A stretch of DNA of 64,000 bases. It comes from Histomonas meleagridis 2922-C6/04-290x. Its lineage: Eukaryota; Protista; Parabasalia. Position 1 is the first letter of the stretch; each line of letters starts with the position of its first letter. Under the pieces are notes generated by a model. That model had not been told where the DNA came from. It made no database searches and saw only the letters and a list, made by a program, of their open reading frames with translations. The position numbers and the translations under genes are program-made. Positions 13,727-60,462 of this stretch are shown piece by piece. The stretch spans positions 1 through 64,000 of the forward strand of contig JAANOX010000244.1 in the NCBI GenBank assembly GCA_020184695.1. Reading direction: 5' to 3'.

Positions 13727-15780
13727 TTATAATTTTTTAAGAAGTAAATTTACTATTTCTGTATAACCTTTTTGCTGTGAAATTTGTATTGCAGTCAAAT
13801 ATTGTTAAAACATATTCTAAATTATTCAAATGAATATTTTTTGCATTAACATCAATTCCTTTATCTAAAAGTAATTTTACTATTTCTATATTATTATATC
13901 TAACTGCTATATGAAGTGCTGTTTCAAATTATTAAAACATATTTCAAATTATTAAAACTTATATAAAATTATTAAAACATATTTCAAATTATTAATACAT
14001 ATATAAAATTATTAAAACATATTATAAATTATTAAAACATAATCCAAATTATTAAAACATATAAAAAATTATTCAAATGAATACTTATTGCATTAACATC
14101 AATTCCTTCTTTATCAATAAGTAATTTTACTATTTCTATATTGTTATTTCTAACTGCTATATGAAGTGCTGTTTCAAATTATTAAAACATATTCTAAATT
14201 ATTAAAACATATTCTAAATTATTAAAACATATTCCAAATTATTAATACATATATAAAATTATTAAAACATATTATAAATTATTAAAACATAATCCAAATT
14301 ATTAAAACATAATCCAAATTATTAAAACATATTTTAAATTATTCAAATGAATAGTTTTTGCATTAATATCAATTCCTTCTTTATCTAAAAGTAATTTTAC
14401 TATTTCTATATTATTATATCTAACTGCTATATGAAGTGCTGTTTCAAATTATTAAAACATATTTCAAATTATTAAAACATATTTCAAATTATTAAAACAT
14501 ATTAAAAATTATTAAAACATATTACAAATTATTCAAATGAATATTTTTTGCATTAACATCAATTCCTTTATCTAAAAGTAATTTTACTATTTCTATATTA
14601 TTATATCTAACTGCTATATGAAGTGCTGTTTCAAATTATTAAAACATATTTCAAATTATTAAAACATATATAAAATTATTAAAGCATAATCCAAATTATT
14701 AAAACATATATAAAATTATTAAAGCATAATCCAAATTATTAAAACATATTTCAAATTATTAAAGCATAATCCAAATTATTAAAACATATATAAAATTATT
14801 AAAGCATAATTCAAATTATTAAAACATATATAAAATTATTAAAGCATAATCCAAATTATTAAAACATATTTCAAATTATTAAAGCATAATCCAAATTATT
14901 AAAACATATATAAAATTATTCAAATGAATTGTTTTTGAATTAACATCAATTCCTTTATCTAAAAGTAATTTTACTATTTCTATATTTCCTGATTTAACTG
15001 GTTTCCACCTGCAATTGCATATTTAGATGTATTTTTGATATTCGAATTATTTAATAACAAATATTTAAAACATTTAATCGAACCAAAAAATGCACAATAA
15101 TCAATTAATGAAACTTTTTTTTTGTTAACAAATGAGCATCTTTCATAAATTGATGGCCTAATTATTTGGTTGAAGTCAAACTCATTATGTGATGATATTT
15201 CTTGAAGCTTTTCTAAATCATCATTTTGAAGTACTTTAGCAATTTCTAATGGATTAACTCCTTCGTTTACATATTGCATATGAAGCTTCCAATCATCTTT
15301 TGATAATTCATCAAGTGCTGAGATGAATTCTCCAATGAGTTTTGGTCTTGAAAATTTGTTCATTAATTTGTTTATTTCTTCTTTTGTTTTGTATTGAGAA
15401 AAATATAATGTATTCATGTTCTTTACTGAAGATGGTTCAATTATTTCTTCTTCTATCATCTTTTCAAGAAGGAAATATGATTCTTGCTTTTCTATTCTCA
15501 GTAAATATTTACAAAAGATTTGAACAAGATTAGCTTCAGTTTCACTTTTGTTTTTATCTTTTTCATCTTCTTTTTCTTTTAAAGTTAATAAGTATTTAAT
15601 ATATATATTTTCATTATTTGTTTGGGAAACAAAAGCTGAATAGATAAGTCTAGAAACAAGATAGTTAAATGTATATGGCAGCCTATCTACAAATAAATTA
15701 ATTGTTACTTGAACTGATGTTTCTAAATTATTTTCGTTGAGATTAAAGACAATTGATTCTAGTGATTTCGAGAGTTGCAT
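13727..15780 (-). pseudogene. DUF3447-type N-terminal domain plus array of ankyrin cassettes split by non-canonical spacers (pseudogene or processed gene)
   Basis: ORF 14980-15780 has LIDYCAFFGSIKCFKYLLLN...KYAIAGGN, typical of trichomonad DUF3447-ankyrin proteins. It is fused out of frame to a partial ankyrin cassette. Cassettes follow at 14537-14632, 14347-14445, 14077-14175 and 13830-13925, and a terminal repeat ends in TAA at 13727. Confidence 0.8.
13926..14923 (-). repeat. Blocks of 20-bp tandem repeats (about TTTAATAATTTGAAATATGT) filling the spacers between ankyrin cassettes
   Basis: Plus-strand unit caaattattaaaacatattt with variants. Spacer lengths are 151, 171, 91 and 291 nt, all 11+20n. 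Confidence 0.9.
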
Positions 15781-20961: not shown

Positions 20962-21034
20962 CGACAAGTTGTATTCGTCACTTTTTGTTTTAATTGTACG
21001 TCACTTTTTTATACTTTAAATTTTCAAGTAGTAA
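20962..21034. promoter_or_regulatory. 73-bp bidirectional promoter
   Basis: Two GTCACTTTT copies (about 20977 and 21000). On + they read as the Inr TCACT; on - they read as AAAAGTGAC, resembling the Trichomonas M2 motif. Located between divergent ATGs. Confidence 0.6.
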
Positions 21035-22255
21035 ATGAAAACTTCTTGGAACAAAAAATTGGATAAACAGATTGAATCTATCAGGAAAAAATTATTGGAA
21101 CTTGGAAAAACTAACCAAGAACGATATCATTCTTTTACTCAAGGAATTTCGATGAATAAAAAAAGATTTCAAGAAAGAATCAAATTATTGGGTATTGACA
21201 TCGACGAACAAGGTGTTGATTATATTTGGGACAAAATTGGAGTTTCTGGTAAGTTTATTAGGTTTGATGATTTTACCAAATTAATGATGAAATCATTAAA
21301 TTTAAGTTTGGTTACTGACCAACCCATAAGTCTTATTGATGCTTTAAAGAACAATACAAAACTATTTTTAAATAGTTGTATTGATTATGATCCATCTGTT
21401 ACTGGCTTCATATCATATCGTGAATTTATAACAATTGCAAATTTTTTAGCAGGATCATGTGACTCATCAGAACTCGAAAATACACTTTTGAAATATGACA
21501 CTCGAGAAAATGGTTTAATTAATTATTTTTATCTTTTAGGCGATATATCAGAAGAAATCAATTTATCACCTCGCCGTAGTGTTCCATCTACTCCATCACC
21601 ACGACAAAGCAGAAGGTTAATTGATTCACCTCCCAATGATTTTAATTCTTATTCTACCCCTACACGTGGGCGTTCTTATTCAAGTCGAGAAAGAATAAGT
21701 TCGCCTGTTGACCTCATTCGTACCCCACGCAAGTCACCTCCACCATTAGATCCTAATCTTTCTCAACCAACTCCTCACAAACCCAGGTCGCCCGTTAACT
21801 TTGAAAACGTTTTCAAAACTCCATCAAAGCAGCTTAACGGTCGCCTTGAGACTCAACCGTTAACGGTTCCAGCAAAGGGACGAAATTTATTTGAGACAAA
21901 AGATCAACCACCAAAGCATAAAGAACGTCTTTTTGATTATAGTAATGCTGAGCGTGTTGATGGGCTTTCAACCGCTGAATATATTGAACTCATTGCAAAA
22001 CAAATCTCATGCGGAAGTCGAGAATGCTTCATGAAATGGCGTGGACAACATATGTACGTTGATGCATATGACCTTCGTAATGGATTTGCAAAAGATTCAA
22101 ACATTATTATTCCTTATAAAGAGGCAAAAGCAATTGTAAGAACATATGGAGGCAAACTGACACTTAGTAGTTTCGTTCGAATGCTTGCTGATGGAAATAG
22201 ACTTGCAGAACTGAACAAATCTAAGAATGTAGGAAGTGATTATTCTGATTTTTAG
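21035..22255 (+). CDS. EF-hand-like protein with central Pro/Ser-rich linker
   Basis: 406-aa ORF. Degenerate EF loops DYDPSVTGFISYREF and YDTRENGLINY. Confidence 0.55.
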   Translation: MKTSWNKKLDKQIESIRKKLLELGKTNQERYHSFTQGISMNKKRFQERIKLLGIDIDEQGVDYIWDKIGVSGKFIRFDDFTKLMMKSLNLSLVTDQPISLIDALKNNTKLFLNSCIDYDPSVTGFISYREFITIANFLAGSCDSSELENTLLKYDTRENGLINYFYLLGDISEEINLSPRRSVPSTPSPRQSRRLIDSPPNDFNSYSTPTRGRSYSSRERISSPVDLIRTPRKSPPPLDPNLSQPTPHKPRSPVNFENVFKTPSKQLNGRLETQPLTVPAKGRNLFETKDQPPKHKERLFDYSNAERVDGLSTAEYIELIAKQISCGSRECFMKWRGQHMYVDAYDLRNGFAKDSNIIIPYKEAKAIVRTYGGKLTLSSFVRMLADGNRLAELNKSKNVGSDYSDF

Positions 22256-22442
22256 CTTTGTAATAAACTTTTCTTTTTTGTATCATTCATTTTGTTATTT
22301 TTATTATTGTGTTTATCAAATGAAGTAATTAACAAAAGATTATTAAAAACGAGCAAAAGCATTTCCGAATTAATGATAGAGATTTCTGAGGATATCGTAT
22401 CAAAACGCATTCAAAACGTGTATCGTTAATTAAAATCTTTAT

Positions 22443-23766
22443 TTATTTTGTTTTTTCTGTTTTTCTTTTAATGCATAATTTTCTAGTAAATCTAGAATAG
22501 TCTGATTTTCCAAGCAAATCCTCGCTGTTTCCAATATAGTTTTACCGTTTGCGGCCACCATATTCAAATTCGGATGTTGATCCAACATTAATTGGATTAC
22601 TTTTGGATCCGGGTTTTCCTGTAAAATATAATTTTTTAATGCAGTTGATCCGTTATTATCAGCAGCATTAATATCAACTCCAGCTTTAAACAGTATATCT
22701 AAAATCTCATAATGACCATCAGGCGGCGAATCATTTCTTCTAATTGCAAAAAATGTCGGAAATTTAAAAAACTCAAAAAAATACCATTAAAAAGCACAAA
22801 AAAACATTATCAGGTATAAGTGGGCTCACACCGCAATCTAGAATCAAACGCAAAATATTCGGATCGCCTGAAGCAGCAGCCCAATGAGCTGCGTTTTGCC
22901 CAAGGTTATCCACTTGGAATACGTTGATTCCATAGTCGATAAGTAACTGAACAATTTCATATGACTGTTGGAAGCATGCAGTATAAAGCGCGTTCGTACC
23001 TTTCGATGTCGTATATGATACATTCGCACCAGCATCTAATAATAATTTAACAGAGTCATAGAGACGTAATGAAATGGCTTTCATTAAAATGGATAAGTCT
23101 TTGTTGTCACTTCCTTGGATATTAAACCCGTGTTCGATTAATAGCTCAAGCGTTTCAATGTCTTTAAGTAAAATGGCATTCATAAAGGGAGAGCGATCTG
23201 AAAATCGGACATTCGCATTGACAGTGGCACCGTTTTGAAGTAACAAACGTAAAAGTTGTGGTGATTTGGAACATGAAGCATAAAAAACTGGTGTATAGCC
23301 ATCAACAACAGAATTAACATTAACACCATGTGAACAGAGAAATGAGGTAACTTCTAAGGAACCACCATAGGCTGCATAATGAATGGGCATGAAAAATAAA
23401 ATAAATAAACTTCATATGAAAAATTGAAATATTGGCTGTCTTGAGATTGACACTTACACCCTGATCATAGATGTACATAAAACATTCAAGAGAATCAAAA
23501 AAAGCAGCAATGTGAATTAATCCAATGTTTTCTTGTGGAATTCGATTTGGTTTAGGTAAACTATGTGTTAGATATTATAATGATGGATCAATTTATATTA
23601 TTGATCCATCTCAAAAAATATACTCTGAGACTGATAAAGAATATGTACATGAAGTTAAATATTCTTTTCCTCCATCAAAACATTGAACCCGTATTATATC
23701 ACGTAGTTTTTCAACTTGGTTTTCTTTGATTGCACTTACAAGTTTTTCTTTTACTAATGTTCGCAT
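22443..23766 (-). CDS. Ankyrin-repeat protein with one canonical intron and two 37-nt non-canonical spacers
   Basis: ATG at 23766; intron 23561-23623; spacers 23394-23430 and 22766-22802; about 9 ankyrin repeats (e.g. DGYTPVFYA, KGTNALYTA, LGQNAAHWAA, NGSTALKII, NGKTILETA); probable 1-nt homopolymer slip at about 22624; TAA at 22443. Confidence 0.8.
23561..23623 (-). other. Canonical parabasalid-type spliceosomal intron, 63 nt
   Basis: 5-prime GTATAT and 3-prime TCTAACACATAG, matching the Trichomonas ACTAACACACAG fused branch-point/acceptor. It contains in-frame stops, and removal restores the frame (TCA GA|T TTA CCT). Confidence 0.85.
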
Positions 23767-23849
23767 TCTAATATAAATTCAAGAAACACTTTTTGTAAAC
23801 GGATTCAAAAAGTGGTGTTCCTTTTAGGAAATTCATTATTAATATTAAC

Positions 23850-25027
23850 ACCAAAGAATCATATTATATAATAGAGAAAATGATTGAAAAAAATTTAATT
23901 GATTCAAAAATTACCAAAAATATTTTTGTACAAAACAGAAGAAGAAAACAGAAAAAAAAATTGGTTCTATGGAGATCCCTTTGAAAAAACTTTTTCAACT
24001 AATTATGATAAGTTATCAAAGAATGATTGGGAACTCCACAAAAAATTAATTAAAGAAGGAGTTAATCCAAGTAAAATATCAAAAATCATTCGATATGATG
24101 AAATCGAAAAACTTCAAGAAATAACATCACAAACAAATTTTAATCAAACAATTGAGCCATCACTTTATGAAAGATGTTCATTTATTAATCATAAAAATGC
24201 TTCATCAATTGATTATGCAGCATTTTTTTCTTCAGTTAAATGTTTTAAATATTTACTTGTGAATAATGCAAAAGTAGAAAAAAACAGGTAAATATGCAGT
24301 TGCAGGTGGAAACGAAGAAATTATTCATTTGTGTGAACAAAATCATTCATCATTTGAAGATGCATATGAAACACCAATTAAATTCCATCAAAATGATATT
24401 TATTAAATATATTTATGAAAATAAATTAGAAGAAACTAATTTACAAAATTCTCATAAAATAGAATCCAATTAGGATTTGGAAAATCAATATTTTCGAATG
24501 ACTTGGGATGTATATGTGTGAATGGTGGAAATTATGAAATTCTTTTGTTTTTGCTTGGAAATGGGATGAAAGTTAAGGAATATATCATCGGTACAGCAGC
24601 AAAAATTGGTAATCCTTATCTAATTAAATATTTTCTCCAAAATTATCAAATTCAAAACAATATTTTAACAATATTACATTTAAATCAGTAGTAGAAACTT
24701 TTGAAATATTTAAATATCTTATTGTTCAAGAAGAAATTAATGTTAATGCTAAAGATAATATTTATATAATATTTCAAAATAATATTTGGAAATTCTTTAA
24801 ATTATTTTAAACAGCACTTCTGGAAGCATCTAGAAATGGTCATACAGAAATAGTTAAATTACTTCTTGAACAAGGAATTGATTTTAATACTAAAGATATT
24901 TATTTGTTTTATTTGTTATTTATTTTAGTAATTTGATATTTCAAAATAATATTTGGAAATTATTTAATAAAGCACTTATTTTAGCATCTAAAAATGGTCA
25001 TACAGAAATAGTTAAGTTACTTCTTGA
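23850..25027 (+). pseudogene. DUF3447-type/ankyrin gene, frameshifted, with spacer-split ankyrin cassettes
   Basis: DWELHKKLIKEGVNP, IDYAAFFSSVKCFKYLL, KYAVAGGNEEII, then cassette 24808-24903 and a 62-nt spacer at 24904-24965. Confidence 0.8.
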
Positions 25028-25293
25028 AAAAGAATAAGGATTGAATGGTTGCAAAATAACATTTTAAAAGGCATAAAAGTCGTCACCCCCACATTTTGCT
25101 GTATTCAATTCTTTCTGAATGAAGCTTTTTTGATTCATGTAGATCACATTTTGCTTCAATAAGCGTTATTAAAACTCTACAGATTGAATTGTTACAAACA
25201 TTCTTTAGTACCTTTGAAATATTTTGAAACGAATCTCTTTTTGTAATATCATAGAGAATAAATGAGCCAATTGCACCTCGGATTTAGGAAATT

Positions 25294-25881
25294 TTAATGT
25301 GCTTCTCCAAAATGGTAGTAAAACCAATAGTTTCCACAATTAATTGAATAAATAAGCGATAATATATAAAATATTACCACGATTACAAATACAATTATTT
25401 TTGTTATTTTTGTTTTAAATGGAGTATGGTAAAGAGATTTGTTAATCCCTGAAATAAAACGATAAATGGTAAAAGCGAAAAACAAATTTGTTAAGAAAAT
25501 TGTAACAAACCAATTATGGAAAAATTGACGAATAACTTGAATTGGAATATAAAACATATCTCCGAGTAATAAAAATAAAAATCCATGTTCATATGCTTTA
25601 AAACAAAATTCTAAATCTGGTTCGACATCATAATTCCATGTGCATGTTCTTCTATGCAAAAATTTATTTGGTAATTTGAAAACTTTGTTTAATATAACCC
25701 AATAGAAAGAAGAAAATAAAACGCCAATAATAAAATTATCAAAAACTACAAAAGAAAAGCAAGTATAACATAATGTCTTGATATTATAACTTGTCAAAGG
25801 GAAAAGATACCAAATCAATGCAACTATTACTGAACATACAACTTGCTGAGGAATTGGGTTAAATATTTTCTTTTTTTCCAT
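25294..25881 (-). CDS. Hypothetical multi-pass membrane protein
   Basis: ORF from ATG at 25881 (MEKKKIF) with several hydrophobic segments. Confidence 0.55.
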   Translation of the reverse strand: MEKKKIFNPIPQQVVCSVIVALIWYLFPLTSYNIKTLCYTCFSFVVFDNFIIGVLFSSFYWVILNKVFKLPNKFLHRRTCTWNYDVEPDLEFCFKAYEHGFLFLLLGDMFYIPIQVIRQFFHNWFVTIFLTNLFFAFTIYRFISGINKSLYHTPFKTKITKIIVFVIVVIFYILSLIYSINCGNYWFYYHFGEAH

Positions 25882-27335
25882 TTTCACAGAAAACCGTTTC
25901 GGTGACTTTTTTTTTCTAAATCTAATTTGTATATATCTATCAATAAAATAAAACAATGAAATATAAATAAGATAACCAAATAATAAGCAGAAAAAGGAAA
26001 AAAATTAACAAAGTTTTAGATAAACTGGTGGAAAAAAATCGGCAGTATCGGTTCCACTTTTTGAACGTGATTCTATTAGACCGATCGAAAAGTGCTGCCA
26101 ATTTTCCACAACAAGTTTAGATAAAATTTTATTAAGGTGTTTTTCAAATTCATTACAATTATTAGTTTTTGTGAATTTAAATAATGATTTAATTTTATAT
26201 GATCGTTTTTAAATATGTTAGTACATTATCATGAATCGAGAAAGAATTCTTCTTTTTTTCTGTTGGCATTTATTTCCTTTTTCTAGATTATCCACTCAAT
26301 GAGTTCTTTTTTAAATTTCTTTTTGTTTGCTCACCGAACAACGCGAAGCTTATGATTATATGTATTTTTTGGTTGATTCAGTACAAAAATGATGACAAAT
26401 TATTAGTTCATGCAAGTTAAATCAGTTGGTAAACAAAAGCGCAGCCGTTTAGAGTATTACTAGGGGAGCTCCCCAAAATTCAATACGTATTGGTATTGCT
26501 GTTAATTGTGTCGAAGCAAACTTTTTGAGCGTTTTTCTTTCATAAGTCGGTTCGTTGTCGAACGATATCACTTTCTTTCTTTCATTTTTTTTTTTTTAAA
26601 CAACAACAATTTTTGTTTTGGCAATTGAAATGAGGGGACTTTCTGTCACTTTTCAATAAAAATATTACGTTTTCAGCTTTGTAAACAGCTTCCGATCGCA
26701 AAAACAACAAAACATGCATCAACAAATGTTAAACCAATGAACCGACGAAAACGCGCCGTTGTTGAAACTCTCTGTATCGTTTTTGACTGATTTATTAGCA
26801 AGTTTGTCAAGTTTTCTCGCAAATGTGTTCTTACTTTTTGGCTTTACCCATGTGTTTCTTTTGCTCATTACAAACCTCTCCAAAAAATTCAGGTTCAAAG
26901 ATTTTTAGTGATCAATTATCTATTTCTCAAACTCTCAAACATTCCACTTATTTCACTTTAGAATCCAAAGGGCATACATGTTTACCTATCTCATCCCATA
27001 ACAAAGAGTGTGTATCCATTAAAGTCACAAATTATATTATGCTAAAAGCGAATGAATCAAATACATTTAATTATATCACAGAAGAATATCAGCATCATTC
27101 CTCTTTATTAAAGTTACCGATGTCATATGTTAAACATTATTTCAAATTCTTTTCTTTGACATTTAATCATTTTTCATTAAAAACTCATTTACCAATTTCA
27201 ATGAATAATAATTTCATGAAGAAAATGTTCAAATTCAATGAAAATGCTCAAGTTCTAATGTATAACTTTTTTATTTTGGGATTTTTTTTATTTTATGAAA
27301 TCAAATTTTTAATGAATAAATTGAAAGCAAACGAA

Positions 27336-32529: not shown

Positions 32530-32900
32530 TCACTTTTTAAAAAATGTGTTGCCGTTTTTTTGATTTCAGGTAGCAATGAAAGAAGTAATTTAACTATTTC
32601 TATATGTCCATTTTCAGATGCACATATAAGTGCTGTATTAAATAATTTCCAAATATTATTTTGAAACATTAAATTATTAAAATAAACATAAAATAAAACA
32701 AATAAATATTTTTGGTATTATCATCAATTCCTTCTTATTCAAGAAGTAATTTAACTATTTCTGTATAACCTCTTTCAGATGCTAAAATAAGTGCTGTATA
32801 AAATAATTTAAATAATTTCCAAATATTTTTTTAAATAATAAATTATTAAAATAAATATCAAATAAAACAAATAAATATCCACTTTTTCATATTCATATGG
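32530..32900 (-). pseudogene. Two orphan ankyrin cassettes with conserved spacers
   Basis: DIY [70 nt, 32801-32870] YTALILASERGYTEIVKLLLE*EGIDDNTKNIY [62 nt, 32640-32701] NTALICASENGHIEIVKLLL. Confidence 0.8.
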
Positions 32901-59420: not shown

Positions 59421-60462
59421 TGAAAATGTAAATAGTTGTGATATTATTAATGAAAATGTAAATAGTTGTGATATTATTAATGAAAATGTAAATAGTTGTG
59501 ATATTATTAATGAAAATGTAAATAGTTGTGATATTATTAATGAAAATGTAAATAGTTGTGATATTATTAATGAAAATGTAAATAGTTGTGAATTTATTAC
59601 TGAAAATGTAAATAGTTGTGATATTATTAATGAAAATGTAAATAGTTGTGAATTTATTACTGAAAATGTAAATAGTTGTGATATTATTAATGAAAATGTA
59701 AATAGTTGTGATATTATTAATGAAAATGTAAATAGTTGTGATATTATTAATGAAAATGTAAATAGTTGTGATATTATTAATGAAAATGTAAATAGTTGTG
59801 AATTTATTACTGAAAATGTAAATAGTTGTGATATTATTAATGAAAATGTAAATAGTTGTGATATTATTAATGAAAATGTAAATAGTTGTGAATTTATTAC
59901 TGAAAATGTAAATAGTTGTGATATTATTAATGAAAATGTAAATAGTTGTGATATTATTAATGAAAATGTAAATAGTTGTGATATTATTAATGAAAATGTA
60001 AATAGTTGTGATATTATTAATGAAAATGTAAATAGTTGTGATATTATTAATGAAAATGTAAATAGTTGTGATATTATTAATGAAAATGTAAATAGTTGTG
60101 ATATTATTAATGAAAATGTAAATAGTTGTGATATTATTAATGAAAATGTAAATAGTTGTGAATTTATTAATGAAAATGTAAATAGTTGTGATATTATTAA
60201 TGAAAATGTAAATAGTTGTGATATTATTAATGAAAATGTAAATAGTTGTGATATTATTAATGAAAATGTAAATAGTTGTGAATTTATTAATGAAAATGTA
60301 AATAGTTGTGATATTATTAATGAAAATGTAAATAGTTGTGATATTATTAATGAAAATGTAAATAGTTGTGATATTATTAATGAAAATGTAAATAGTTGTG
60401 ATATTATTAATGAAAATGTAAATAGTTGTGATATTATTAATGAAAATGTAAATAGTTGTGAT
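59421..60462. repeat. 30-bp minisatellite, about 35 copies (TGAAAATGTAAATAGTTGTGATATTATTAA)
   Basis: Near-perfect tandem array with variant units ending GAATTTATTAC or GAATTTATTAA. Confidence 0.98.

Follow-up and report, generated by a model that had tools for sequence, protein, structure and literature searches.

A conserved, expressed ankyrin gene of Histomonas meleagridis is broken twice by T-rich spacers that lack normal intron signals. RNA contigs remove a net 34 nt at each break while retaining three or six letters that touch neither exon, which fits a so far undescribed kind of tiny intron. The gene lies on the minus strand of the window, i.e., the whole 64,000-nt stretch of contig JAANOX010000244.1 analysed here (28.1% GC, matching the 28% given for H. 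meleagridis; PMC8529796). In our preferred reading, which we hold with moderate confidence, each spacer consists of two adjacent 17-nt mini-introns around a templated micro-exon, inferred to be GAA at the first junction (A) and AATGGT at the second (B).

Gene structure and the two interruptions

The gene (ATG at 23766, stop at 22439) comprises four coding pieces, one canonical 63-nt parabasalid intron and two frame-shifting spacers at the same position of an ankyrin repeat, between the D-x-x and the x-T-P-L-H. Its parts under the preferred parse are as follows, all on the minus strand.

23624–23766: exon 1 (ATG at 23766), ending in phase 2; RNA contigs cover 23624–23754.
23561–23623: canonical parabasalid intron, 63 nt, GTATAT...CTAACACATAG.
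23431–23560: exon 2, first ankyrin repeat, ending ...KTAN (AAT).
23414–23430: mini-intron A1 (inferred parse), 17 nt, ATTTCAATTTTTCATAT; its boundary can slide 1–2 nt to the left without changing the mRNA.
23411–23413: inferred 3-nt micro-exon A, GAA (Glu), at the ankyrin hairpin Gly position.
23394–23410: mini-intron A2 (inferred parse), 17 nt, GTTTATTTATTTTATTT.
22806–23393: exon 3, six ankyrin repeats, FMPIHYAA...LIPDN.
22789–22805: mini-intron B1 (inferred parse), 17 nt, GTTTTTTTGTGCTTTTT, containing no A.
22783–22788: inferred micro-exon B, AATGGT (Asn-Gly), in which GGT (22785–22783) is the ankyrin hairpin Gly.
22766–22782: mini-intron B2 (inferred parse), 17 nt, ATTTTTTTGAGTTTTTT.
22439–22765: exon 4 with stop codon (TAA, 22441–22439), KFPTFFA...QNK; covered by RNA contigs.

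The interruptions reported in the initial annotation are confirmed. They occupy 23430–23394 (spacer A) and 22802–22766 (spacer B), both are 37 nt long and 62–70% T, and both shift the frame by +1. Spacer A starts with AT, ends with TT and contains no GG, and the His-to-His spacing across junction A is 32 residues instead of 33. One correction applies at B, where RNA contigs break after AAT (22806) and not after GTT (22803) as had been assumed, so that this interruption is better described as 40 nt (22805–22766) with six retained letters; in the alternative parse, in which GTT is exon, the insert is 22802–22786. The flanking pieces are ankyrin repeats: the 197-aa product of exon 3 matches PF12796 (Ank_2, E = 2.2e-34) and PF00023 (E = 7.7e-30), exon 4 also matches Pfam ankyrin models, and exon 2 falls below threshold. 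A search of Rfam returned no hit in the window.

Presence in DNA and conservation in related species

The pattern is neither chance nor an assembly artefact, the latter having been named in advance as grounds for rejecting the observation. A 97-nt stretch centred on spacer A, in which every 31-mer touches the spacer, was fully present (share 1.00) in two DNA runs from two samples and absent (share 0.00) from four RNA runs of the same organism.

Absence of the spacers from orthologs had likewise been specified beforehand as counterevidence, and here too the outcome favours the observation. A word-index protein search with exon 3 recovered only two orthologs, both at 59% identity and on contigs from gut metagenomes (termed L001 and L009), and no transcript-derived protein of the organism itself; the C-terminal piece found nothing, a HMMER search against all representatives was swamped by giant ankyrin proteins, and a scan of JGI metagenomes returned only generic ankyrin genes at 34% identity or less. 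In both related species the gene is interrupted at the same two codon positions, by spacers of 38 and 37 nt at A and of 40 nt between the AAT/AAC and AGG codons at B, and eight independent contigs of one species carry identical spacers. All four coding segments are conserved (56–61% identity overall, dN/dS 0.08–0.22): exon 2 is 61% identical to the ortholog over 38 aa, exon 3 is 55–60% identical to the orthologs (dN/dS 0.19–0.22), and exon 4 is 56% identical over 103 aligned residues. For exon 3 the full dN/dS range of 0.08–0.22 was obtained with saturated dS of 1.3–1.7. Coding pieces that lie in different frames are therefore all under purifying selection, and the spacers must be got rid of in all three species. 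The canonical intron is 63 nt in the window but only about 27–40 nt in the two related species (L001 about 2799–2826, L009 about 237–263), where it is of the GT..TAACAC..AG form; it sits at the same phase-2 position and has a TAACAC motif in all three.

Transcript evidence

Placing transcript sequence across both junctions had been proposed as the first check on the initial annotation, and contigs of four RNA runs from two studies were aligned to 21000–26800 for this purpose. In contigs of runs X1, X2 and X3 the canonical intron is skipped exactly (23560 joined to 23624 with no letters between), which shows that these contigs are RNA-derived and that the aligner places junctions precisely. The same contigs join 23431 to 23393 across spacer A with three other letters that match neither neighbour, a net removal of 34 nt. 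Across spacer B, the contig of run X5, which stems from a different study and strain, joins 22806 to 22766 with five letters between and a T aligned to 22766, again a net removal of 34 nt. Contigs of X2 and X3 stop at 22806, X3 also ends at 22766 and X2 at 22771. The alignments gave piece coordinates but not the letters at these low-depth joints, the joint tables being filled by a multi-copy family at 24400–25000, so that the identity of the micro-exons is inferred from piece boundaries and from conservation; only assembled contigs, which drop rare variants, were examined. The elements satisfy the broad definition of an intron, i.e., present in DNA, absent from mature RNA and with exons joined in frame.

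Removal of spacer B is incomplete. The X1 contig (record 1, 21232–23754) retains it while lacking spacer A and the canonical intron, a form that would give a protein truncated after ...PDNVFLCFLMVFF. This contig is identical to the window over 2.4 kb and runs into the neighbouring gene of a convergent pair (21035–22255, plus strand; 22439–23766, minus strand) only 183 nt apart, which ties it to this locus and indicates that the 3' ends of the two genes probably overlap or read through. It also argues against derivation of the processed RNA from another, spacer-less copy or allele, with the copy in the window a decaying pseudogene or the spacers assembly errors. Joined forms were not sought in the DNA runs, but given the DNA evidence, the eight ortholog contigs and purifying selection on the exons we consider this explanation very unlikely. 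Programmed DNA elimination of the ciliate IES type is left undecided, as the DNA runs contain spacer A and B-retaining RNA exists but a mixed DNA population was not excluded, DNA reads not having been aligned here.

If a single contiguous stretch of 34 nt were removed, the retained letters would adjoin one exon or the other and the aligner would have extended into them. Consequently, the first retained letter at A cannot be A and the last cannot be T, whereas at B the first cannot be G, the fifth cannot be T and the sixth is T. Enumeration of all two-cut parses left nine allowed at A and six at B, and the symmetric parses, 17|GAA|17 and 17|AATGGT|17, are among them; GAA is the only parse at A with two equal introns. 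The chance that both symmetric parses would be allowed is about 0.04. No single contiguous excision fits. A single 34-nt intron with shifted boundaries is nevertheless conceivable at B, where a GT..AG pair lies exactly 34 nt apart (AAT|GTTTTTTTGTGC...TTTGAG|TTTTTT, giving Asn-Phe-Phe-Lys) and the X2 contig ends at 22806 and 22771 coincide with the two ends of that interval; at A the equivalent would be a non-canonical 34-nt intron leaving Phe or Ile. Against this reading stand the unplaced letters at A (three runs) and B (X5), the lack of a usable GT..AG at A, where all canonical solutions give stops or the wrong frame, and the orthologs, which lack GT at B (L001) and have no AG at all in A. 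It also fails to explain the invariant central GGT. We regard it as unlikely, although it may exist as a minor isoform at B only. An AG-ended 21+2+19 parse of B fits the two orthologs but is rejected by the window sequence, which has no AG there, and by the net removal of 34 nt seen in RNA.

Comparative support for 17-nt units

The comparative data agree with the 17-nt parse. At B, both orthologs have 17 nt, GGT and 17 nt, with GGT lying 17 nt upstream of the next exon in all three species and being the only conserved non-T feature. At A, the orthologs have 18+AAT+17 and 17+AGT+17, so that one ortholog has 18 rather than 17 nt in A1; the second half is 17 nt in all three species, and 15 of 17 bases match in each ortholog, all starting GTTTATTTAT. 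The central triplets hold 5 T of 18 bases against about 70% T in the spacers, and only 46 of 200000 shuffles are as low. Across the twelve mini-introns of the three species, position 1 is a purine in 12 of 12 (G 7, A 5), positions 2–3 are T in 12 of 12, position 4 is T in 11 of 12, and the last three positions are T in 11, 11 and 12 of 12. The orthologs share ancestry and these counts are thus not twelve independent events; the shifted parse of B1 in the orthologs was chosen by analogy with the window. A scan of the window for removable 17-nt RT...T units between long ORFs recovered spacer A but showed no excess over control lengths of 14–20 nt, so that the class was not demonstrated outside ankyrin genes here.

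Interpretation

The most likely explanation is that each spacer is a pair of adjacent, U-rich intervening sequences of 17 nt (5'-RUUU...UUU-3', without AG or a CTAAC branch motif), both excised from nuclear pre-mRNA around a tiny templated micro-exon, which would be GAA at A and AATGGT at B (or GGT, if the preceding GTT is exon). The mature mRNA would read ...KTAN-E-FMPIH... and ...PDN-NG-KFPTF..., restoring the frame and the 33-residue repeat length. What the data demonstrate is the net loss of 34 nt from RNA at each site, the retention of three and six letters not contiguous with either exon, the presence of the spacers in DNA and the conservation of the architecture under purifying selection; that the retained letters are the central templated ones, that the two halves are excised separately, and the nature of the excising machinery are inferred. 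The termini carry very little information, so how the sites are recognised is unexplained, and B1 has no adenosine for a lariat branch. A fixed length with low-information ends suggests a ruler-like mechanism, and our guess is a spliceosome-derived or ruler-type activity that measures about 17 nt from a 5' RUUU. A spliceosomal origin was not tested, and a non-spliceosomal endonuclease plus ligase is not excluded.

The interpretation offered in the initial annotation is partly supported. It held that the spacers are not the gene's normal intron type and that an unusual processing route exists; both points stand, as the spacers are removed from RNA and the mature transcript carries one more codon than a plain 37-nt deletion would leave. 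It further proposed three routes. Excision of the whole spacer with non-templated or guide-RNA-templated insertion of G is not formally excluded, because contigs do show letters between the exon ends that do not match the adjacent DNA, but it is not needed and appears very unlikely: the required codon already lies in the DNA at the centre of each spacer (GGT at B in all three species, GAA/AAT/AGT at A), the pattern at B would require removal of 39 nt and addition of five letters, and no such nuclear system is known. Ribosome bypass, or programmed frameshifting over spacers retained in the mRNA, is not supported and is contradicted at A. Retention of spacer B in one RNA contig would be compatible with it, but spacer A is absent from RNA contigs of all runs checked, a processed form of B exists in X5, and no take-off/landing codon pair or structure was found; we consider it highly improbable. 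A single excision leaving Phe or Ile is not supported, as the retained letters are not contiguous with either exon. The predicted hairpin residue is Gly at B, as had been guessed, but at A it is probably Glu.

Comparison with known systems

The units fail every defining feature of canonical parabasalid spliceosomal introns (types A and B) that we could test. Their termini are AT..AT (A1), GT..TT (A2), GT..TT (B1) and AT..TT (B2), and in three species 5 of 12 units start with A and 12 of 12 end in T. No spacer contains the (A/T)CTAAC branch motif expected a few bases upstream of AG, although the 63-nt intron of the same gene has CTAACACATAG. At 17–18 nt per unit under the preferred parse they are below the 23-nt minimum (PMC12316389), and even a single-unit reading of 34 nt lacks the motifs. 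The closest counterparts are the type B introns of Trichomonas vaginalis and T. stableri (23–25 nt; PMC12316389), which belong to the same phylum, have a nearly fixed length, a poly-T body and a GT(A/T)(C/T) start, and also occur in repeat-protein genes. However, those always have GT...AG with a (T)CTAAC motif next to the AG, and splicing is reported as at most one intron per transcript in T. vaginalis, whereas the units described here occur in adjacent pairs around 3–6 nt of exon.

Ultra-short introns of Stentor coeruleus (15 nt) and the Bigelowiella natans nucleomorph (18–21 nt; both as cited in PMC12316389) are of comparable size, with a tight length distribution that suggests a length-measuring constraint. 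Those are canonical GT-AG spliceosomal introns spread over all kinds of genes; the present units lack AG and, in this window, are seen only in ankyrin loops. The 3-nt micro-exons of animals and plants similarly retain a single codon between two excised segments, but lie between long canonical introns and depend on exon-definition factors, while the flanking segments here are 17 nt each. Euglenid nonconventional introns are nuclear pre-mRNA introns without GT-AG borders, but are longer and their ends pair into a stable stem. Folds of four spacer regions were no more stable than shuffles (z-scores −0.7 to +2.6), which argues against euglenid-type, BHB/tRNA-type or Ire1-type recognition. None of the U12-type AT-AC features (5' ATATCC, the TCCTTAAC branch site, 3' AC) is present in the spacers. 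In the translational bypass of phage T4 gene 60 a short non-coding gap inside a reading frame is also skipped, but it stays in the mRNA, whereas here the gap is missing from the RNA. U insertion/deletion editing in kinetoplastids and U-appendage in diplonemids also remove or add letters in U-rich tracts of RNA, but are mitochondrial and affect U only; here A, C and G are removed too, in a nuclear gene, and no added letters need to be assumed.

No description of such elements in Histomonas, Dientamoeba, Tritrichomonas or Trichomonas was found in the literature searched, and a real chance remains that the mechanism is categorically new. If confirmed at read level, these would be among the shortest intervening sequences known and the first in parabasalids without GT-AG or a branch motif, and they would flank exons of only 3–6 nt. 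This bears on how little information an excision machinery needs and on whether something other than the canonical spliceosome acts on nuclear mRNA in this lineage. The published Histomonas genome description reports scarce introns and at most one per gene (PMC8529796); a large set of ankyrin genes in this poultry parasite and in its human-gut relatives is therefore probably mis-annotated as fragments or pseudogenes. A more far-reaching reading, which we consider about as likely as not, is that the Histomonas/Dientamoeba lineage has a previously undescribed class of roughly 17-nt, U-rich, non-GT-AG intervening sequences (5'-RUUU...UUU-3'), excised from nuclear pre-mRNA by a length-measuring, possibly non-lariat mechanism and able to isolate single codons as micro-exons. 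In this view they would have spread, partly by 20-nt tandem duplication, through the hairpin loops of very many ankyrin genes that are currently unannotated or look like pseudogenes. Generality here rests on other loci of the window that were only partly parsed, as described below.

Related repeats and transcripts in the window

At 13736–14998 (minus strand), ankyrin cassettes (ETALHIAVRYNNIEIVKLLLDKGIDVNAKN) are separated by arrays of a 20-nt tandem unit, composed of a 17-mer such as ATATGTTTTAATAATTT plus three variable bases; TRF gives a period of 20 and 48.8 copies. In the phase set by the flanking exons, the 25 variable triplets that we parsed are all sense codons (GGA, GAA, TAT, ATA and others), so the loops would read like YGEGYEYGEGYGYE, although no RNA evidence was obtained for this locus. 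The first 17-mer of each array matches spacer A1 of the ortholog L009 in 15 of 17 bases, which suggests that 20-nt duplication (mini-intron plus codon) is how such spacers grow.

Dispersed GHTEIVKLLL-type ankyrin cassettes at 24760–24810 and 24898–24970 (plus strand) and at 32690–32800 (minus strand) are separated by related T-rich spacers of 51–77 nt, for example 17+TAT+17+AAT+17+GGA followed by AATTATTTAATACAGCA. The last segment does not fit the 17-nt consensus, and a 17+3+17+3+28 parse that keeps Thr-Ala-Leu is equally in frame; RNA contigs here come from many paralogs and were not assigned to a locus. Summed word depth at 24100–24900 is extremely high in all RNA runs (up to about 10^5–10^6, against about 20–100 for the target gene), reflecting a large, highly expressed multi-copy ankyrin family. 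At 24270–24300, the plus-strand gene with a trichomonad ankyrin N-terminal region changes frame at an A7 run (24278–24284), where family RNA contigs often lack one A; this could represent a frameshifted copy, a sequencing error or slippage. Finally, a 30-nt minisatellite of 34.7 copies with 96% matches occupies 59421–60462.
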